Of a stretch of 64,000 bases of DNA, positions 3,877 to 43,658 are shown piece after piece. This DNA is from Hyaloraphidium curvatum SAG 235-1 (Eukaryota; Fungi; Monoblepharomycota). Position 1 is the first letter of the stretch. The number at the start of each line of letters is the position of its first letter. The DNA lies in NCBI GenBank assembly GCA_025558095.1, contig JAIVFI010000038.1, forward strand, positions 62,001 through 126,000. Direction: 5' to 3'. The position numbers were made by a program, and so were the translations under genes. The notes under the pieces are model-generated. The model was not told the DNA's origin. It saw only the letters and a list, made by a program, of their open reading frames with translations, and did no database searches.

Positions 3877-4314
3877 TCTGCCAATCTGCCCAGCCAAAAA
3901 TGTACAGGTGCAGGTCCGGCAACCTTATACCTAGTACAGCGCTGACCCGTATTGGAACACGGTCCAACCGGGTCCCCTCCAATCATCGACCTCGCGGACC
4001 TCCACCGGTATGCTCAGTGCCTTCAGGGGAGCGAGCAGCTCCGCACCGCGCGCGATGTAGTCTCTCCTCTCGTGGTCGGAAATGTACGTAACGCAGACGC
4101 GCACGGAGAGCGGGTTCGACCGCGCGACGGCCGCGAGGGCCCCGGCGAAGCGTTCGCCGGACGCATGACGTGGTTCCAGACGAAGAGCCTCTTGAGCCCG
4201 GGTGGGAGGTGCACCATGCTTCCAATGTTGGGGTCGGGTGATCGGCGTTGCGTGTCCTTGCGACTCCGCACCCAACTCCGGCCCGCATCGCGGTCGGAGA
4301 GCGCGAATTCCGTG

Positions 4315-7156
4315 ATGTCGGAAGGGCTGCCGACGTACTCGCCGGCTTTGCCGCCGCGGAGCACCCCGCCGGCCGTGCCGCAACGGACAACGTCGGCCGT
4401 CGGCCGCGCCGCCGCACCCCCGCAGCCCGCGTCGCCGGCAACGCTGGTCGCCCCGCAGGCGCCGCCCGTGCCGCGGTACCCCGCTCCAGACGCGCCCCGG
4501 TCCTCGGGCCTCCGGACCGGGCCCTCCTGGCGCGTCCCCAAGCCGCCCGCAACCCCCGCCCCGCAGCCGGTCGGCAACGCGGCAATCTCGCCGTCGTTCG
4601 ACTACAATGCCCCTGCTCAGCAGACTTTCAGCCTGAAGGACCTGCCGACGCCGATCGGGCGGCCGCTCAACGCCGTTCTGTCGATCCCGAACGCGTTCCT
4701 GCAGCCCATCGTGACGCAGGGCCAGTCGCTGTACTTGAGCCACCTGCGGCGCCGCGGTGTGGGCGAGGTTGCCCGGGAGCAAGGGCTGGCGCCCTACTTC
4801 CCCGTGCTCATCGTGCCGGGGTTCATGAGCAGCGGGCTCAAGATCGTCGAGAGCACGATGAGGCCGGACTGGGTCGGCGAGCGCGCGTGGCTGTCGATCC
4901 AGAAGCTCGGCTTTGGCGGAGTTGCGGCACGGAACGAAGAGGGTGAGTGTCGTTTCGGGGGTACATGGCTCAACTTCCACCTGACTTCCCTCCATCGAAC
5001 CAGTCCTCCGCGAGTTCAACCAGCGCGCCCCTTCCCCGTCGGCCTCGACGCCGACATCCTCGCTCGCCCCGCCGAGCCCCATCCGCACTTCCACCCCTTC
5101 AACAGCGACGCCCCCGAACCTTCCCCGGCGCCCGTCGTCGGCTTCCACCTCGTCCGCCTCGGTAGCCGACGACGACGACGACGAACCGCCCTCGTACGAC
5201 GACATTGACGCCGCCTCGGTGGCCAATCTCGGCCCCGCCGCCGCCGGCGAATCGCAAACGCAGCGCGCGTGGCTCGCCCACGTCACCCTGGGCCACGACG
5301 CGCGCGAGGATCCCCAGCACTGCATGGTGCGCCCCCTCGCCGGGCTCGAGGGCGTCGACTTTCTCCAGCCGGGCGCGCTTCTCGAGCTCGGCACGTACGT
5401 GTTCGGCCCGCTGATCAAGCAGCTCGTGGACGTCGGGTACAGGCCGGGGTTCAACCTCGAGGCCGCGCCGTACGACTGGCGGCTGTGCCCGCCGGACCTG
5501 GAGGACCGCGACGGGTACTTTTCCCGCCTGGCACGGACCGTCGAGCGGCTCTGTGCGACGGGCAACAACGTCCCCGTGGTGCTCCTCGCGCACTCGATGG
5601 GGTGCCGCATCGCGCATTACTTTTCCGAATGGGCGCACGAGCGCCTCGGGGACGCGTGGTGCGCGCGCTTCATCCATTCGGTGGTGGCCGTCGGCGGCCC
5701 CTGGCTCGGCGCGCAGAAGAGCGGCCGCGGGTCGGTGACGGGCGACTCGATGGGCGTGCCCTTCCTCAAGCCGGACGAGTGCATCTGGTACTCGCGCCGG
5801 CTGGGCAGCCCGCCGCTGCTGTTCCCCGTCGGGCCGAGGTTCTGGAGCTTCCTCGCCCCGGCTTTCGCCTCGGCGCGGCCGCCGGCGCAGGAGGACGTGA
5901 CCTTCTGCTTCGTCAAGCAGGAATCCTACCTCGTCCTGACCGTCTGCTCCGTCGCCGTTGCGCCGACCGCCTACACGGCGTCGGCGGACGGCCGCACCCC
6001 GCACTACATCCAGCTGGAATGGCGCGGCCGCAAGGTCAGGTCGGAATCCAACCCCTTCTTCTCCCTCGCCGCGCGCACGCTCGAGTGGACCTCCCCGCAG
6101 CGCTTCCAGCTCCCCACCGAGCACCCCGGCAAGCTCGTCGCTGGCCACCCCTCGAGCATCCTCAAGATCTCCCTGATGCTCGACGTGCCGGGGCTGGACC
6201 CCGTCGTCGCGCTCGCGGAGCTGGACCTCGGCGCGCGGTTCGCCTCCTCCGCCGGCGCAGCGGGGGCGGGCGAGGACCTCCGCCTGCTCGAGGAATGGGA
6301 CGGCGTGCCCCTCCTCGCCAGGGACCTCCCTGCCCCCTCCGCGCACCTCTCCGCCACGGTCTCGCTCCGCACCTCGATGCCCGCCGCCGCCCCCGTGCCG
6401 GGGTGGAACCCCTCCCGGCCGGGGGAAGCGTACGCGCCCGCCGCGGTCAGGGAGATGCTGCTGGAGGACGGCGCGATGGCGCTGCTGAATCTGTGGGAGG
6501 GGGTGTACGCGGAGGATCCGCGGGCGGCGAGGTCGCTGCAGGGGTTGCCGCCGAGGGGTATCAAGGCGTGGCACAGTGGGTTTCCGGACGCTGCGCTCGG
6601 TCGGCGGGTTACTGACCCGCCGCAAACCAGTCGTCTACTCGACGGGCCGCAGGACCGAGGTCGGCTTCTGCGTGCGCAGGCGGTTCTGCAGGGTCACCAA
6701 AGGGCCGGACGGCGGCCCGTGGAACCAGTTCAAGCTCGACAAGGGACCGCGCACGGTGCCGGGGACCAACGGGAAGCTGGTCTGCGAGAACGGGATCGTG
6801 TACGAGGTGGGCTGCAGCGCCGGCTCGCCCTTTGCCCGCGATGGCTTACCCACCTCCCCGTGTTTCAGACCCCCGCGACACCGCAGCCCTCCCTCGACCC
6901 GACCAAACCCGCCGCCACCTCCGGCGACGGCACCGTCCCGTACATCTCCCTCATCCACCCCTTCACCTGGCGCGCCGCGGACCCCTCGATGGCCGTGTCG
7001 TCGCACCTGGTGCCCGGGGCGGAGCACCGCGCGATCCTGGCGGACGAGGGGTTCCAGCGGCACGTGCTGGACTACGTGTGCGCGAGGCCCAAGAAGGGGC
7101 TGAGGGAGGTGAAGCCGATCAGCACGAGGGAGAAGGTGGAGAGGTGGTTCAAGTAG
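4315..7156 (+). CDS. LCAT/PDAT-family acyltransferase or phospholipase with a Pro-rich N-terminus and an internal C2-like insert
   Basis: PVLIVPGFMSSGL, AAPYDWRL, nucleophile motif AHSMG, GGPWLGA, GDGTVP, AEHRAIL. Introns 4943-5003, 6576-6630 and 6807-6868 restore one reading frame. Confidence 0.9.
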
Positions 7157-37123: not shown

Positions 37124-38461
37124 ATGCCGCCCCTTGAGCGCGTCGGCGGGCTCTTCCTCATCGCGGGCCTCGCTACCTTCGTGATGTGGAACGGAGTTCC
37201 CGCGCCGGGGACGCCTGCGTGCGCCGACGGGCCCGCGGGACGCGTCTTCGAGTGCGCGGACCGCGGGGGCCGCAACGCGTGCTACGTCGGCGAACACCTC
37301 GCTTTCTACGCGCCGCTCGATCGAACATTTGGCACCGAGGGCCACGCGCTGGACTTTGTGCTGGAGGAGCGCGGGCCGGACGCGAAGGCGGGCGGGGACG
37401 CGGGTTCGCGGACAGAAACCCCGGCGGAGCTGTCGTTGATCGTGATCCAGCGGCACCTGCGCGGCAATAGCGACGGCTGGCCGTGGGCAAAGTGGCGGTG
37501 CCGCTTCACGGGCCCCGGCGGCGGCGAGACGACGCCGGGCACAGCGGGATACGGGCACAACCTCAACGCGTGCCCCGTCCCGCCCAAGCTGGCCGCGAAG
37601 CTGCGCGCCCGCACCGTACCGCACCTGACCGTGGACCTGCTGGCCGCAGACTCGGAGGCCCCGCTGGACACCAACCTCACCGCGATCCCTGTGCCGCTCC
37701 TGCCGTCCCGCCCGAGGCGCCGGCTGGCCGTGCACACCATGGTGCGCGACGTCGCGGCGCAGCTCGCCGAGTGGATCGAGTACCACCGGCTGCTGGGCTT
37801 CGACCACTTCTACCTGTACGACAACGGCTCGCGGGACAACCCGGCCTCGATCCTGCGCTTCTACATGGAGCGCGGCCTCGCCACCCTCGTGGCCTGGCCC
37901 TTTTCCTCCCACCCGGGCACCCACTGGAACAAGATCCAGGGATCCTCCATCTCCCACGCCCTGTACTTCTTCGGCCCGTCGACGGAATGGCTCGCCGGGT
38001 TCGACGTGGACGAGTACTTCGAGCCCAACCGCACGGGCCGCTTCTTCCCCCGCAAACCGCCCCGCGCCGATATCCCCACCGCCCTCGACTTTTCCTTCCC
38101 CGAGCGCGGCCCGTTCCGCGGCGGCCTGCAGGTCGCCGTGTGGCACGCCTCGTGCGACCCGCCGGAGCAGCGCGCGCTGCTGGACCGGAAGCGGTACACG
38201 CTGCCGGAGCTCTGCCGCCGCGTGCTGCCGGGCGGTGTGCCCAAGATGTTCGTGCGGCCGCGCCACGTGCGGGCGATCGTGAGCCCGCACGAGCTGTCGT
38301 TCGGGGAGCGGTTCGGCGGGGTGGACATGCCCGAGTTTGGGCGGATCAGGCACTACCACTACCCCAAGGGCGGGGAGGTGGATGGGTCGATGGACGAATA
38401 CGTGGGGCCGCTCAGGGAGGCGCTGGACGCCGCAAGGGGCGAGGGCGCCGCAGGGTTCTGA
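37124..38461 (+). CDS. Glycosyltransferase family 92 (DUF23)-like type II membrane protein
   Basis: N-terminal TM; LAVHTMVRD...LAEWIEYHRLLGFDHFYLYDNGS; DVDEYF; KMFVRP...H; RIRHY. Confidence 0.85.
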   Translation: MPPLERVGGLFLIAGLATFVMWNGVPAPGTPACADGPAGRVFECADRGGRNACYVGEHLAFYAPLDRTFGTEGHALDFVLEERGPDAKAGGDAGSRTETPAELSLIVIQRHLRGNSDGWPWAKWRCRFTGPGGGETTPGTAGYGHNLNACPVPPKLAAKLRARTVPHLTVDLLAADSEAPLDTNLTAIPVPLLPSRPRRRLAVHTMVRDVAAQLAEWIEYHRLLGFDHFYLYDNGSRDNPASILRFYMERGLATLVAWPFSSHPGTHWNKIQGSSISHALYFFGPSTEWLAGFDVDEYFEPNRTGRFFPRKPPRADIPTALDFSFPERGPFRGGLQVAVWHASCDPPEQRALLDRKRYTLPELCRRVLPGGVPKMFVRPRHVRAIVSPHELSFGERFGGVDMPEFGRIRHYHYPKGGEVDGSMDEYVGPLREALDAARGEGAAGF

Positions 38462-38727: not shown

Positions 38728-40085
38728 TCAGCAGCAATCCGACTTCATCACGACAACTTCTTCGTCCTTGTCCTCGGAGCAGCACGCCCCGCCGGAGTCA
38801 GGGGAGTCCTTTCCGTTCACGACCATCTTGCCGGCAACGGCGGTAACCGCTGCATGACCAGGCCCCTCAAATCTGAGCCATCCGAGCACAGCTTCTCCGG
38901 TCGCCAGGCCCAGCATCGCGGCAACGAACACCCACACGTTGAAGTTCATGACGACGAGCATGATTATGTAGGCGGCTGACGAGGACAGGAGGGTGCCGAT
39001 GAACCTGTAGGATGCTGCCTTGAGACGCCGGGTGAGCGAAGGCGCCGGGTTGGCAAGGTCTAGGCGCCTTGCCAGGGTCGACAGCAGATCACTGAAGGTG
39101 ACGGCGCGTGAGCAAGGAGGTACGCAAGGGACAAGAAGCTGCGGCCTCGCACCGGAGAATGGAAAGTGCAATGCTGCCGACGCCGAAAGCGAATACGGCG
39201 AGCAACGAGGCGACGAACTGGCCGACATCTGGGGCCGAAGACCCGTCAGTATGCTGAGCATTGAGGCGCGATATCGTTTTGGCTCACTGTTCGGGACCCA
39301 TGTATAAGAGAGGAAGTAGTCTCTGATCCCGCCATGGAAGTACATGATCATGGACGGTGCGACGTAGCCGTCAGCGTTAGACGTGCAGAGCGTGGTGGCG
39401 CCAATTGGTTGCTGCTTGCACATGGAGGTGTGGATGGTGCACTGGCTCATGGTCGGCATCTGGATGCACAGGTCCGAGTAGACGGCCTGGCGCGCGGAAA
39501 GTTCTACCCTTAGGTTTGGCTTTCTAGCGCTGCCTTGGGCCAACTCACCAGGAGATCGCAATTGGCGTAGGTCACGCCCCCAGCGTAGGAGCATTTCTCG
39601 CAACCTGGCATGGTCATCTCGGTACAGATGCTCTTCACGGCCGCGTTGACTTCGTCCGTCGTCGGAAGACCAGGAAGAGGCGGGTTTGCTGCACAGGCCG
39701 CGACGACCGACCCGGCTGTGGCGTTGCACATCGAGTTGTAGCTGCGGCACCCCCTCATCATGCTCATGCCGTCGTCGGAAACGCAGGTGTCGGCCAGGAG
39801 GCTCATGCCAGTGCAGTACCCGCCCGCGGCGAGGGCCTGCGCGGAAGCGCCACCCGACCGGCAGATGCCGGCGACCGAACACCCGGTCATGAACGGCATG
39901 GCCGTGCACAGGCTATCGACGTCGGCAGTGGCGTTTGTCTCGGGATAGACATAGCCGGCGCAGCTCGGCGTTGCGGGGGTGGATATGCAGGTCTCTGTGG
40001 GCGCGGATCCCCCGCCCATCTCCATGGCCGCGGCGCCGGCGGTGAGGAGGAGGGCCGAGACGAGGGCGAAGGCGAGCGAAGGCAT
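38728..40085 (-). CDS. Ctr-family copper transporter with a Cys/Met-repeat ectodomain
   Basis: Signal peptide; four CxxMxxMxxC-like repeats; MIMYFH; YIIMLVVMNFN (MxxxM); GLATG (GxxxG); CC pairs in the C-terminal tail. Introns 39487-39548, 39229-39287 and 39092-39152. Confidence 0.93.
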
Positions 40086-40576
40086 TGTGCGCGGGACAAG
40101 ATGGCACTGGGCTCTTCGGGAGTACGGCGACCTTGCTCAGGCAGTTCGTGCGGTCCAAGGGTCCGGCCTCAGACGGACCGATCACAATGCGCACTGGCCG
40201 GCCGGACAAAACTTGGGATCGGCGCACTTCTGATTGTCTTGCTTCCCTGGGGGCCCCGGAATTCGCGGCAGTGGATATGCCTGAATTGTTTCCGGCGGCG
40301 GATGGAGGAACTGGACTGCGGCGCGTCCGGGGACGAACCGGCCCCCAGTTGAGCGAAAAGGCCTCGTCCCGCAGTTTGTCCGCCAGCGGGGGGCGCAAGG
40401 CCGGAACGCGCGAGTGCTCACTTGATCTGCGAAATGCAACGGCTAACGAACTTCGATCCGGCGCATCGAGTGCGCGATCTCTCGGTTCTGTTCGGCCGTT
40501 ATCGGAGCGGCTGGTGGCTTCAGGCGCCCAGGCGACGGCCTCACTCACCGAACCGCCGTTCTCCACCGACCCTCCA
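40086..40576. promoter_or_regulatory. Bidirectional promoter of the copper pair with three GCTCA-core (CuRE-like) elements
   Basis: CTTGCTCA 40132-40139, TGAGCGAAA 40350-40358 (reverse complement TTTCGCTCA) and AGTGCTCA 40413-40420 resemble the Mac1 element TTTGCTCA. Confidence 0.4.
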
Positions 40577-41764
40577 ATGGCGACTCGTTTCCTCACCGCC
40601 GCAGTAACACTATCCCTCGTCTTCTCTTTTGCTCCCCGCACAGAGGCGCAGCATGGGGGATCCATGAATATGACGGGACCGGGTGGCGTCCTCTCAAGCG
40701 ACCCCTGCGTCCTCCAACCGTCGCGGCCTGAGTGCGAGTACTACCACTTTCCGATGGCCAACACGACAGCCGACCTCAACGCTCTCTGCACGGCCATGCC
40801 TTTCATGAGCGCCTGCACGATTCGCGACATGTGTGAGGCCGGGGCCGTCCCGACGCTGAACGCCACCGGGTGCGTCTCGTGACATCTCGTCCCCGCCGAC
40901 GTGGGCGCCTGTTAACTCGCTACTTCTGACGTGCCGAAATTCCACCACAGGTGGTGCAAGCCGTTCTCCCTCGTGGCCCACGTCTGCTCAGTTGATGAGG
41001 GGATGTCGAGGATGAAGGGTTGCGTCAACTACAACAGGTGCGCTAGTACGGCCGGTCGTCGTGGTCGGAAGCAGGCTGAAAAAGGAGGATCCTTGTCTGA
41101 CACCTGCCGCCTCCCGGTCAGCATGTGCAACGAAACCGCCGGATCCGTTGTCATTCAGTGCGAGGTCATCAAGCCCCTCCCGAACCTTCCATCCACCAAG
41201 GCTGTGAACGCCGAGGTCAAGAGTATCTGCGAAGAAATGCCGGACATGCAGGGTTGCGAGAAGGTCGGTCTCGGACGCATTGTCGACGTTCTTAGCCCCT
41301 CCGTCCAACTGCTGACTCACTCTCGCAGTGTTCTTTCGCCAACAACGTCACGTACGCTAACTGCGACCTCCTGGTACGAGCAGTAGCCAGCGAATCCAAT
41401 GTGTTGCCCTGCTAACTCCGCAGCCGCTCCATAGGGAGTCTACTCGCAACTTTGCCGCTCGATGCCGACGCACACACAGTGCTTCATGATGAACACATTG
41501 TGCGCTGGGCCGACGGGCACCACATCCCTTTGCTCGGGTTGGACCTACACGCAGTACCAAGGTCAGACCTCGCCGCCGTCGGTCGTGACGCAAACGAACG
41601 GGGTTGTGCCGACGAAGCCTACCTCGTCCATGACGGTTGCGACGGCGACAACGACGACTTCCATCATCAGCACAAGCAGGCCCAGCAGCGGCACCACAGT
41701 TGGTTTCAGCATTACTCTGGGCCTGGCACTTGCACTCGTCGCCCTGCGCTACACCACTCTGTAG
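40577..41764 (+). CDS. Secreted or GPI-anchored Cys/Met-repeat protein (Ctr ectodomain-only paralogue)
   Basis: Signal peptide; LCTAMPFMSAC, GMSRMKGC, ICEEMPDMQGCEKC, LCRSMPTHTQC; Thr/Ser stalk; hydrophobic end GFSITLGLALALVAL. Introns 40870-40950, 41038-41121, 41264-41328 and 41374-41434. Confidence 0.88.
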
Positions 41765-42122
41765 TTCTGCACAAAGCAGACGAGGAAGCAGATATCCCGG
41801 GAAGTGTAGGATCAGAGCAGGGAGACCTACAGTCGATACGAGTCCGCCACGGGCCATCTGAGTAGACGTCCCTTGACATTGCTCTTTTGACTTTGCCCCC
41901 ACCGTTGTTTGCTCCGTCGATCGCGGCGGACGCGACGCGATCGTGGGGGGCGCGAGCTAGCGCCAGTGGAGGGCACTCAATCGCATTTGTAATCGGCGGC
42001 GAGCCCGACGTGAGCATGCTCGTTTTGTTCTTTCAAACTCTAGTCGGTCCGTCCCGTTCGCGGAAGAGCAGGTGGGCGGGAAAAGCCAACTCCAGTTCTT
42101 TCCTCCGCCGGCCCGTCCGACG

Positions 42123-43658
42123 ATGGCGCCCGCTGCCGCCTCTTCCTTCACCGGCGCTGAATGGCTTGCACTTTTCCCTGCCGCTACCGAGCCCCGGCCG
42201 GCGCTGTCGGGCGAGGCGCCCCCGCCGGACCCCGCTGGACCCGTCCGCCTTGCGCTGCCTCTGACGGCCGCGACGCTGCTCGACGCACTCTCCCCGTTCC
42301 CCGCTTTGCGACGATTCACGCGTCTGCAGATGCTGCTGAGCCCGTGGGCGGTGCGCGCGGGCATCAGGCACGCCGCCGACTTCGTTGGGCGCACCCCGCT
42401 GTTCCTCCTCATTTGGTCCTTCAACGATGGGCGATTTTCGACGCACAACCTCGCGGTGGGCACGGCCGCGGAGCTCTTTGCGTTCTTGTTCGTCCTGCCG
42501 GCTATACTGGGCGCCGGCGGGCACAAGGGTATGAGGACAGGCCTTCGCGAAGCCCCGACAAAGGAGGGGGAGCTCGAATGGGACAGCCACTGGCTCGCGG
42601 GCTTCATCAGATGGCGTCAGCTGTTTGCCGGTGAGGAAGGGCCGGGGCCCGTAAGTCTGGTGCAGCACGATCCCACGGATCCGCTCTGTCCGTGCGAGGC
42701 GGAGACGTGCGCGGGTTCGCTGTTCGCCCACCCCGGAGCGGCGAGGATGGCTGATGCCGTTTTGAAGGCCTTCGTCACTGGAGTTATCGGCTGCTTCTTT
42801 GTCAATTGGTCCGTCTTGGTTCTCGGCTCCTTTTGGACCTCGGGCTGGGGCCCAGCACTAGCGGTCGTGTCGTGGGTCGCGATCCTAAACTGCTATCCGG
42901 TCAACTGGCTTATGCTACCCCGGCAATCGATTGCGTGCTTGAAGCTCTCTTCGCGCCTGCGCAACCGGGCGGCGTTGCTGGCCATGGCGAACCTCGTGCG
43001 CCGGTTCGAACCACTCATTTCAGGAACTACCTGGACATCTCCGCACGATTTTGACGGCACGAACCTGTACTCGGAGCTGCACGATAAGCTGACGCACGTC
43101 TGGGAAACGCGTTTCCACTACTGGTCGGACTCGATTGCCGCCATGCTGTTTTCGGTCGCGTGGATGATCGTTCCGTGCATCATCTTTGCGGTAAGTCTGT
43201 CGCCCGACGCGGCCAGGTTCCTCCCTGCTTACCTGCGATGCGGGCAGGTGGGCTCCTACTGCATCCCGTTCCATGCAATCATGATGATCCTCTTCCTCCT
43301 TTGGGGCGCCCTCTCGGACCTCACGGTGATGGCCGCCTCAAACGCCGAGATCACGGCCGTCTGCGCTGCCTACCACCGCGCGCGGATCGAGCTCCGCCGG
43401 CTCGCGGTCCGTGCGGCCGAGTCCCCCGACGCCGAGCGCCTGCGGCCCGTCGCTGAGGCGCTTTCGAAGCACGATGCGCTGCTGAGCGCCTACATGGATG
43501 GCGACAGGTACAAGGCCAAGTACGCTGGGTTCACGGCAGACTACTCGACCGTGCGGACGGTCGCGGCTACGCTCTTCACCGTCGCCATCGGCACGTTCAC
43601 GCTGCTCAGGGGGGTTGGGGTGTCGTTCACGATCGAGTCGGTGTGTCCAGGCACCTGA
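42123..43658 (+). CDS. Seven-TM protein, GRL/7TMIC-like family, paralogue 2
   Basis: HDPTDPLCPCEAETCAG; YSELHDKL..VW; AASNAEITAVCAAY; KYAGFTADYSTVRTVAATLFTVAIGTFTLLRGVGVSFTIESVCP. In-frame intron 43191-43247. Confidence 0.82.
   Translation: MAPAAASSFTGAEWLALFPAATEPRPALSGEAPPPDPAGPVRLALPLTAATLLDALSPFPALRRFTRLQMLLSPWAVRAGIRHAADFVGRTPLFLLIWSFNDGRFSTHNLAVGTAAELFAFLFVLPAILGAGGHKGMRTGLREAPTKEGELEWDSHWLAGFIRWRQLFAGEEGPGPVSLVQHDPTDPLCPCEAETCAGSLFAHPGAARMADAVLKAFVTGVIGCFFVNWSVLVLGSFWTSGWGPALAVVSWVAILNCYPVNWLMLPRQSIACLKLSSRLRNRAALLAMANLVRRFEPLISGTTWTSPHDFDGTNLYSELHDKLTHVWETRFHYWSDSIAAMLFSVAWMIVPCIIFAVSLSPDAARFLPAYLRCGQVGSYCIPFHAIMMILFLLWGALSDLTVMAASNAEITAVCAAYHRARIELRRLAVRAAESPDAERLRPVAEALSKHDALLSAYMDGDRYKAKYAGFTADYSTVRTVAATLFTVAIGTFTLLRGVGVSFTIESVCPGT

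Follow-up and report, generated by a model that had tools for sequence, protein, structure and literature searches.

The locus and its two paralogues

Chlamydomonas takes up copper mainly through CTRA-CTR proteins, which are also found in early-diverging fungi and amoebae. Knockout of Chlamydomonas ctr3, the one pore-less CTRA protein to have been knocked out, gave no copper phenotype (bioRxiv 10.1101/2023.10.19.563170). Within the window, a stretch of 64,000 nucleotides from the chytrid-grade fungus Hyaloraphidium curvatum (Monoblepharidomycetes), two paralogues are transcribed divergently around one 491-nt spacer (positions 40086-40576, ATG to ATG), as a sequence-only reading of this DNA had described. 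One gene encodes a Ctr copper importer and the other a pore-less paralogue of its Cys/Met-rich ectodomain. The pair is real, and both splice models are identical to deposited H. curvatum proteins (P0156 for the minus-strand gene and P0005 = KAI9004361.1 for the plus-strand gene). Database searches were carried out exon by exon or with these two database proteins, which equal the models. The locus is a clean natural experiment on the role of CTRA, in which an apparently surface-tethered copy with a single CTRA domain is physically, and probably also regulatorily, coupled to its transporter in a two-gene unit that has been preserved through duplication.

The two proteins are 47% identical across 222 residues (E 2.7e-65), which is far beyond chance. 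All four pairs of Cys/Met repeats that the sequence-only reading had quoted were found in both proteins (minus / plus: CTAMPFMTGC / CTAMPFMSAC; MSMMRGC / MSRMKGC; CTEMTMPGC / CEEMPDMQGC; CIQMPTMSQC / CRSMPTHTQC). The shared intron proved to be a phase-0 intron lying directly 3' of ...YANCDLL in both genes (residue 179 vs 189), and together with the level of identity this bears out the claim that the genes are true paralogues.

The transporter gene

The minus-strand gene (38728..40085) encodes 391 aa in four exons (40085-39549, 39486-39288, 39228-39153 and 39091-38728) separated by GT-AG introns of 62, 59 and 61 nt, and the deposited name of P0156 is 'Ctr copper transporter family-domain-containing protein [Hyaloraphidium curvatum]'. 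Its ectodomain of 190 aa (residues about 30-215; 39379..39998, intron 1 inside) was delimited by homology and the family alignment and carries 18 Cys and four Cys/Met motifs. The Ctr pore module, including TM1, follows at 38731..39351 with introns 2 and 3 inside. It contains MIMYFH before TM1 (residues 225-230; 39334-39351), MLVVM in TM2 (residues 315-319; 38947-38961) and GLATG in TM3 (residues 332-336; 38896-38910), the last two 12 residues apart (MxxxM-x12-GxxxG), and the protein ends in ...SDCC, with the terminal CC at 38731-38736. Hydrophobic segments after the ectodomain lie at residues 251-269 and about 301-343, the second comprising TM2 and TM3. On the Pfam Ctr profile (PF04145; cut-off 25.3 bits) the protein scored 64 bits (E 2.9e-17), and exon 4 alone matched the same family with E 1.3e-9. 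By profile and motifs the minus gene is a member of the Ctr/COPT family (PF04145, SLC31), and the earlier description of it as a complete Ctr was upheld. Its product, with a signal peptide, a disulfide-rich all-alpha CTRA with four Met-pair motifs and a three-helix Ctr pore, would act as a Cu(I) importer.

The pore-less partner gene

The partner gene (40577..41764, plus strand) encodes 298 aa in five exons (40577-40869, 40951-41037, 41122-41263, 41329-41373 and 41435-41764). Each of its four GT-AG introns (81, 84, 65 and 61 nt) has a CTRAC branch point 16-24 nt 5' of the acceptor, and GC3 is 0.77 vs about 0.5 for GC1 and GC2; expression and splicing of the gene are predicted from such signals and from the deposited model. 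A signal peptide is predicted at residues 1-25 (40577..40651), where a hydrophobic N-terminus is followed by a small-x-small site between ...PRTEA and Q, as read by eye and from hydropathy. The CTRA domain follows at residues 41-220 (40697..41527, introns 1-4 inside), as delimited by AlphaFold2 and the family alignment, and contains 18 Cys and the four motifs at residues 71-80, 116-122, 163-172 and 196-205. A Ser/Thr-rich stalk at residues 226-272 (41543..41683) was recognized from its composition and disordered model, Ser and Thr making up 44% of the 50 residues preceding the tail (224-273). The C-terminus (41684..41764) was read by rule as a GPI-type signal, in which SSG (273-275) and a short spacer precede a hydrophobic core of 16 residues (278-293) and the five polar residues RYTTL before the stop.

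Neither the partner nor its exons matched any family in Pfam, a local pore HMM did not match the plus gene, and no PF04145 coding sequence was found 3' of it, the only match on the contig being the minus gene; the plus gene is for these reasons not a Ctr. The sequence-only reading had itself raised the possibility that the plus gene splices onto a Ctr pore further 3', which was rejected since the contig has no pore-coding sequence there. The picture that this reading gave of a pore-less product with a Ser/Thr stalk, a hydrophobic C-terminus and a GPI-type tail is supported at the level of sequence.

The combination of signal peptide, CTRA, stalk and hydrophobic tail suggests export of the product and its retention on the cell surface, for which a GPI anchor is the likeliest means, and the genome encodes the GPI transamidase subunit Gpi16 (PF04113; contig C5, E 1e-62). 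The tail could also be read as the membrane segment of a single-pass type I protein with a five-residue cytosolic tail, its function otherwise unchanged, as the core followed by R-Y-T-T-L in this copy (C38) has the positive-inside arrangement and a 19-residue window reaches 1.89 on the Kyte-Doolittle scale. Against this, the core is just 16 residues long here, and in the sister partner on contig C2 (see below) the tail consists of SGG, a 7-residue spacer and a core of just 14 residues with a proline, then K. The small-residue triplets SSG and SGG stand at the usual distance before these cores, and in 10 analogues from other organisms the cores (12-22 residues; in P0103 an unresolved Ala-rich stretch) end no more than two residues from the C-terminus. 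We consider a type I anchor unlikely, and the partner is probably held at the membrane by a GPI anchor.

The CTRA domain and its family

By sequence, the ectodomain of both genes is the CTRA domain named by Strenkert et al. (bioRxiv 10.1101/2023.10.19.563170). Their report describes CTRA-CTR transporters from chytrids, amoebae and green algae, places CTRA proteins that stand alone in chytrid-grade fungi as well, and states that the pore was lost independently more than once. Because that report covers both CTRA-CTR proteins and pore-less copies, the family was already known. Of the earlier interpretation, the paralogy, the complete Ctr, the pore-less GPI-type copy and the independent origin (see below) stand; the remark that such a system was not described in fungi does not, as chytrid CTRA-CTR and CTRA-only proteins are already in that report. 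What is new, as judged from the predicted proteins and gene order, is only the membrane-tethered rather than soluble pore-less copy and the paired arrangement.

Of the 452 relatives that phmmer returned for the CTRA ectodomain, 213 had E<=1e-10. The 452 come from, among others, the chytrids Quaeritorhiza and Sorochytrium, the aphelid Amoeboaphelidium and the green algae Chlamydomonas incerta, Volvox, Edaphochlamys, Haematococcus, Monoraphidium and Ulva. Three-CTRA pore-less proteins of C. incerta, Edaphochlamys and Volvox matched the window ectodomain with E 4e-33 to 5e-40; the named C. reinhardtii CTR1-3 were compared by description. An alignment of 90 CTRA sequences had 12 invariant and 15 nearly invariant columns, among them those for Cys and Met in each of the four motifs, and the partner keeps the 18 Cys and the conserved Met positions with a sole departure, Met to His at residue 202. 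AlphaFold2 predicted an all-alpha fold for the partner CTRA (pLDDT 92-98) and a disordered stalk (pLDDT 45-56). A Foldseek search of the CTRA model against the PDB gave nothing at E<=0.001, the best Z in a wide VIA-align search was 3.8, which is the noise level, and the sole hit in the ESM Atlas was a Mucoromycota Ctr cluster (TM 0.55), so that in these searches the CTRA fold has no solved structural relative. We found no published measurement of Cu binding by any CTRA domain.

A sister pair and purifying selection

The entire head-to-head pair is present twice in the genome, and the second pair, on contig C2, matches the C38 pair in orientation, in the size of the spacer and in the architecture of the partner. 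The deposited model of the sister partner (P0025) is both truncated and over-extended; the corrected model has 312 aa. Between the two pairs, identity is 68% for the partners (omega 0.20 for the whole protein, 0.14 for its CTRA part) and 66% for the transporters (omega 0.24), at a similar dS for the two (1.15-1.4). Both genes are under purifying selection (omega about 0.2), and the stalk and tail are also kept between the two partner copies. The tree separates a partner clade (SH-aLRT 99) from a transporter clade (SH-aLRT 96) and joins the two in a Hyaloraphidium clade with SH-aLRT 90.7.

This history would be explained by a DNA-level duplication of the 5' part of a CTRA-CTR transporter gene, in which the signal peptide and CTRA were retained and the pore gave way to a Ser/Thr stalk followed by a short hydrophobic signal at the C-terminus. 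The two-gene unit would have been duplicated whole at a later time.

The tethered architecture was also seen in other chytrids and in green algae. The 10 further CTRA-only sequences in other organisms, which represent nine distinct proteins (P0151 is in the P0013 cluster), likewise have a signal peptide, CTRA and a hydrophobic tail, and in Monoraphidium a CTRA-only gene of the tethered type is the immediate upstream neighbour of a CTRA-CTR gene. In the closest relative found (P0001, L012), no partner lies within 6 kb of the transporter. A single ancient origin of the tethered architecture was rejected (AU p 1e-10, delta lnL 270), and this result, with the grouping of the partner with the Hyaloraphidium transporters, supports the earlier proposal that it arose independently of Chlamydomonas CTR3. 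The architecture recurs independently in several lineages and, we therefore argue, is selected.

The divergent spacer

The 491-nt spacer is a candidate bidirectional promoter. The C38 and sister-pair spacers have three words of at least 12 nt in common, a number that was reached in 0/2000 shuffles, and more than one shared word was seen in 0/122 other window chunks. A global alignment of the two spacers was uninformative and only these word-sharing statistics are informative. A candidate cis-element, the conserved 13-mer CACAATGCGCACT (40183..40195, plus strand), lies 98 nt upstream of the transporter ATG and contains AATGCGCA in both spacers; it has exactly two copies in the 31.9-Mb genome, one per pair spacer and in the same orientation. 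Genome-wide, 16 sites match the 11-mer core of the shared word, none of them near the four ferric-reductase and four multicopper-oxidase loci; the C25 and C33 transporters and the transporter of the relative lack the word in their upstream sequence. Neither spacer contains the canonical Mac1 element TTTGC(T/G)C(A/G), and the Chlamydomonas-type GTAC core has a single occurrence, in the C38 spacer. One copper-fist (PF00649) gene is present in the genome, on C21. The words held in common suggest that partner and transporter are probably coupled in their regulation via the spacer.

A proposed role for the partner

The reading that we prefer, held with rather more confidence than doubt, is that the plus gene encodes a tethered CTRA partner of the importer, which binds Cu(I) outside the cell, aids the permease and is co-regulated with it via the spacer. 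In the tethered CTRA, Met and His side chains would bind Cu(I) extracellularly, as the chemistry of these ligands and the genetics of the fused transporters (bioRxiv 10.1101/2023.10.19.563170) suggest, and the tethered copy would increase the local Cu available to the CTRA-CTR permease or relay Cu to it. Both genes may be Cu-responsive through the common spacer, possibly by the one copper-fist factor encoded in the genome. We keep the earlier term 'surface Cu(I) receptor' conditional because of the Chlamydomonas ctr3 knockout without phenotype.

The same ligand set would suit sequestration equally, and the partner might instead be a surface buffer or shield that binds excess Cu(I)/Ag(I) and protects the cell and does not feed the permease. 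A Ser/Thr stalk would put the CTRA domain in the wall layer, the ctr3 knockout has no uptake defect (bioRxiv 10.1101/2023.10.19.563170), and Ctr-derived non-transporting proteins, for example RiCTR3A, have been linked to copper tolerance. (RiCTR3A of Rhizophagus was itself rejected as a relative and is not comparable because it is a three-helix Ctr-like protein without CTRA.) However, in both pairs the partner is linked to an importer, with spacer words in common, and Chlamydomonas CTR3 is induced together with the importers in copper deficiency (bioRxiv 10.1101/2023.10.19.563170), which makes a shield an improbable account of the partner. We think it highly improbable that the partner is a decoy or negative regulator that becomes part of the trimeric transporter's ectodomain cap and reduces uptake. 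Homologous ectodomains could in principle associate and a common spacer would yield stoichiometric co-expression, but nothing points to association (complex prediction of the two ectodomains gave a score of 0.00, which counts neither for nor against binding), and repeated independent origins fit a gain in capacity better than self-inhibition. That the plus gene is a functionless, decaying partial duplicate or an annotation artefact is barely credible since, although its expression rests on sequence signals and the deposited model and the sister model P0025 is itself faulty, omega is low at a synonymous divergence above 1 (lowest in the CTRA part), 18/18 Cys are kept, the four introns are clean with their branch points, third-position GC bias is strong, and stalk and tail are kept between the copies.

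A wider form of the preferred reading, that of a tethered partner aiding the importer, is put forward only tentatively, as we regard it as rather doubtful. On at least four occasions in chytrids and green algae, a CTRA-CTR gene may have been partially duplicated to yield a lipid-tethered CTRA 'copper antenna', which would stay adjacent to its source gene and give two-component high-affinity Cu(I) uptake with it, the Hyaloraphidium promoter being bidirectional and controlled by a copper-fist factor.

Comparison with known systems

In its pore the transporter resembles yeast Ctr1/Ctr3 and human CTR1, which likewise have a Met motif ahead of TM1, the MxxxM-x12-GxxxG pattern and Cys in the C-terminus. 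Those proteins differ in having short unstructured Met/His-rich N-termini, with neither the folded 18-Cys CTRA nor an ectodomain-only paralogue. In organization the pair resembles that of Chlamydomonas, where CTR1 and CTR2 are Cu importers and CTR1-3 are all CRR1 targets (bioRxiv 10.1101/2023.10.19.563170); in both systems CTRA is fused to a Ctr pore and a pore-less derivative has come from partial duplication. Chlamydomonas CTR3, however, is a soluble periplasmic protein with three CTRA domains, whereas the Hyaloraphidium partner has one CTRA, a stalk and a GPI-type tail, a separate origin, and a head-to-head position across 491 nt from its transporter. Dictyostelium discoideum p80 and its single-CTRA paralogue are likewise a case of a one-CTRA copy duplicated from a CTRA-CTR gene, but that copy is described as soluble and neither a tether nor a paired promoter is reported for it (compared by description, bioRxiv 10.1101/2023.10.19.563170).

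In logic the pair resembles that of Cryptococcus neoformans, where Bim1/Cbi1, a GPI-anchored Cu-binding surface protein controlled by the copper-fist factor Cuf1, aids Ctr1 under Cu limitation (PMC9258870); for Hyaloraphidium both the function and the partnership are inferred. The Bim1/Cbi1 fold is unrelated, with an LPMO-like histidine brace that binds Cu(II), and the protein is not a paralogue of the transporter (PMC9258870). If the copper antenna proposal is correct, antenna and permease would be a paralogue-based convergent counterpart of Cryptococcus Bim1-Ctr1.

Results

The transporter gene (window 38728-40085, minus strand) and its partner (40577-41764, plus strand) lie on one of the 55 contigs (C38, JAIVFI010000038.1) of the 31.9-Mb assembly of H. 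curvatum, a monoblepharid, chytrid-grade fungus, and the window DNA is eukaryotic, with a GC content of 62-72% and short introns. Both gene models were built from sequence. The transporter model (391 aa, four exons) was identical to the deposited protein P0156, named 'Ctr copper transporter family-domain-containing protein', and the partner model (298 aa, five exons) to P0005 (KAI9004361.1), deposited as 'hypothetical protein'. The seven introns, 59-84 nt in length, all have GT-AG borders, CTRAC branch points were found in each of the four partner introns, and GC at the third codon position was 0.77-0.79 vs approximately 0.5 at positions 1 and 2. The sequence-only reading had described divergent paralogues 491 nt apart with four common Cys/Met repeats and an intron at the same codon, and these points were borne out: the ATG-to-ATG spacer measured 491 nt, the proteins are 47% identical over 222 residues (E 2.7e-65), the four motif pairs were all found in both proteins, and a phase-0 intron lies immediately 3' of the YANCDLL codons in both genes. 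The complete Ctr pore proposed for the transporter was likewise recovered (the MIMYFH and MLVVM-x12-GLATG motifs, three hydrophobic helices and a terminal CC; 64 bits against Pfam Ctr), as were the Thr/Ser stalk and hydrophobic C-terminus of the partner, where the stalk (44% Ser plus Thr in the 50 residues preceding the tail) leads through SSG and a short spacer into a hydrophobic core of 16 residues, with RYTTL after it. Splicing of the partner onto a downstream pore was excluded since the transporter gene is the only Ctr-coding sequence on this contig. The pair is flanked by a GT92-family glycosyltransferase gene (37124-38461, plus strand, Pfam E 4e-18) and by a 528-aa multi-pass membrane ORF with no Pfam family (42072-43658, plus strand).

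Single exons, or the database proteins P0156 and P0005, were used as search queries. A full phmmer scan with transporter exon 1 returned 452 relatives (213 with E<=1e-10), among them proteins of the chytrids Quaeritorhiza and Sorochytrium, the aphelid Amoeboaphelidium, Neoconidiobolus, Cyanophora and many green algae; three-domain pore-less relatives were found in Chlamydomonas incerta, Edaphochlamys and Volvox. The ectodomain is what Strenkert et al. (bioRxiv 10.1101/2023.10.19.563170) called the CTR-associated (CTRA) domain. In an alignment of 90 CTRA sequences, 12 columns were invariant and 15 nearly so; almost all of these are Cys or Met of the four motifs, and the partner has kept all of the conserved Cys/Met columns save one, Met202, which is replaced by His. 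This column is the second Met of motif 4 and is Met in at least 90% of the 90 domains; residue 202 (window 41471-41473) is His in both partners of the Hyaloraphidium genome. The replacement is a lineage-specific change of a putative ligand, by which metal or redox-state preference could be altered. AlphaFold2 modelled partner residues 41-220 as an all-alpha domain (pLDDT 92-98) followed by a disordered stalk. Structure searches with the CTRA model found no resembling fold among solved structures, and the sole structural match in the Atlas was a Mucoromycota Ctr cluster.

The genome contains five Ctr genes (on C38, C2, C25, C33 and C22), four of which carry CTRA; the fifth (C22:479289-479688, plus strand) had no match to the CTRA ectodomain. 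On contig C2 a second transporter (P0002) and a second CTRA-only gene are arranged head-to-head across a spacer of about 500 nt. Within this locus (L009, C2:1178000-1187000) the transporter is on the minus strand with its ATG at 3941, has the same three intron positions as the C38 transporter and is 70% identical to it in exon 1. The deposited C2 partner (P0025, 264 aa) starts at an upstream ATG and is truncated after ...CEK by intron read-through; a corrected four-exon model (L009 4444-4877, 4932-5091, 5142-5186 and 5251-5550) encodes 312 aa, with motif four followed by a Ser/Thr stalk and a GPI-type tail made up of SGG, a spacer of 7 residues and a hydrophobic core of 14. At its second exon junction an insert of 6 residues (RLLTCILL) supplies an additional Cys. 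Divergence between the C38 and C2 copies was similar for the partners (68% amino acid identity, dS 1.4, omega 0.20, with 0.14 in the CTRA part) and the transporters (66%, dS 1.15, omega 0.24). That both genes are equally old and under purifying selection indicates duplication of the pair as one block and function in both partners. The flanking genes differ between the loci, and neither C38 flank is duplicated at C2.

Global alignment of the C38 and C2 spacers was uninformative. They have in common one 13-mer and two 12-mers; a 13-mer match was reached in at most 4 of 500 shuffles and three words of at least 12 nt in none of 2000, while none of 122 other 500-nt chunks of the window had more than one word of at least 12 nt in common with the C2 spacer. 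The 13-mer, CACAATGCGCACT, occurs at exactly two sites in the 31.9-Mb genome, one per pair spacer and in the same orientation, at window 40183-40195 (98 nt upstream of the C38 transporter ATG) and L009 4089-4101 (148 nt upstream of the C2 transporter ATG). Within it, AATGCGCA resembles the Mac1-type core, TTTGC(T/G)C(A/G), yet does not match it, and the canonical core is absent from both spacers. The 11-mer core of the word has 16 genomic sites, compared with 3 when the word is reversed as a control, and no site lies near any ferric reductase or multicopper oxidase gene that was located. We therefore regard the 13-mer as a conserved candidate element without assigned specificity. The genome has one copper-fist gene (PF00649 domain at C21:140241-140351, minus strand, E 1.9e-15), whose product is the obvious candidate regulator of copper genes.

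Local pore and CTRA profiles were used to sort 158 retrieved proteins. Besides P0005, ten CTRA-only sequences, representing nine distinct proteins (P0151 falls in the P0013 cluster), had a common layout of signal peptide, one CTRA, low-complexity linker and hydrophobic C-terminus; the named organisms are the chytrid Quaeritorhiza and the green algae Enallax, Monoraphidium and Ulva. Their hydrophobic cores are 12-22 residues long, save for an Ala-rich stretch without a delimited core in P0103, and small-residue triplets lie 2-13 residues upstream. Eleven rows of this layout, including the corrected C2 partner, were placed in a 154-domain tree, in which these proteins are scattered and the starred branches force at least four changes; a single clade of them was rejected by the AU test (p 1e-10, delta lnL 270). 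The C38 and C2 partners form one clade (SH-aLRT 99), joined with a support of 90.7 to the Hyaloraphidium transporter clade (96), which places the origin of the partner inside this lineage, with a transporter gene as its source, in agreement with the independent origin proposed earlier. Three CTRA-region introns of the C38 partner (40870-40950, 41038-41121 and 41264-41328) occur in none of the four CTRA-CTR genes, and the C2 partner has all but the first, which suggests that they were gained after duplication.

Linkage of CTRA-only and CTRA-CTR genes recurs elsewhere and is not universal. In Monoraphidium minutum (MU601679.1) the gene of P0103, CTRA-only with a hydrophobic C-terminus, immediately precedes, on the same strand, a CTRA-CTR gene of 536 aa (L014 8001-9843 and 10894-14427), and in Volvox africanus the locus tags of CTR3-like and CTRA-CTR genes are three apart. 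The divergent neighbour of the CTRA-only, GPI-type P0015 of Quaeritorhiza haematococci (JADGJF010000514.1) is not a Ctr but a ZIP-family metal transporter about 2.5 kb off; the two genes lie at L013 391-2053 (minus strand) and 4579-5709 (plus strand). No CTRA-only partner was found within 6 kb upstream of the gene of P0001 (L012 5923-7240, Logan SRR26194948, GC 53%), the nearest relative of the C38 transporter with an ectodomain 64% identical; the called protein reads through introns, and a reduced tree unites P0001 with the C38 copy, not with that of C2 (support 89).

Discussion

These results show the gene of a Ctr importer physically coupled to that of a pore-less paralogue, both under selection; the paralogue is predicted to be secreted and has a putative signal for membrane tethering at its C-terminus. 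Outside the cell the 18 Cys would be disulfide-bonded, leaving the Met pairs and His202 as Cu(I) ligands, a role that follows from what is established on how the Mets motifs of Ctr proteins behave chemically at their N-termini. The tethered CTRA, held on a presumably O-glycosylated stalk, may then concentrate Cu(I) or relay it to the cap that CTRA forms on the permease, and the shared spacer would co-regulate the two genes. The partner could instead act as a protective copper sink, be held by a type I membrane anchor rather than GPI, or serve as a decoy; a non-functional copy is unlikely given an omega of 0.2.

The CTRA family, its presence in chytrids and repeated pore loss are already published (Strenkert et al., bioRxiv 10.1101/2023.10.19.563170), and the system is of a known kind. 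The observations of the sequence-only reading are confirmed and its interpretation is supported in part; its remark that it knew of no such description in fungi does not hold for the CTRA family. In that report Chlamydomonas CTR1 and CTR2 are copper importers of the CTRA-CTR type, CTR3 is a soluble, periplasmic protein of three CTRA domains that can be knocked out without a phenotype, 'Fungi incertae sedis' and Amoebozoa have both CTRA-CTR and stand-alone CTRA proteins, pore-less proteins have several origins, and GPI is not mentioned (0 occurrences) (bioRxiv 10.1101/2023.10.19.563170). What is new here is a predicted GPI-type tether that recurs across lineages, the bidirectional pairing of CTRA-CTR and CTRA-only genes, the copying of this pair as one unit, and the conservation in the two pair spacers of a word that the genome has nowhere else. 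In function the nearest analogue is Bim1/Cbi1 of Cryptococcus, a GPI-anchored, copper-binding protein which interacts with Ctr1 and is induced by Cuf1 in copper starvation (PMC9258870), although its fold is unrelated to CTRA.
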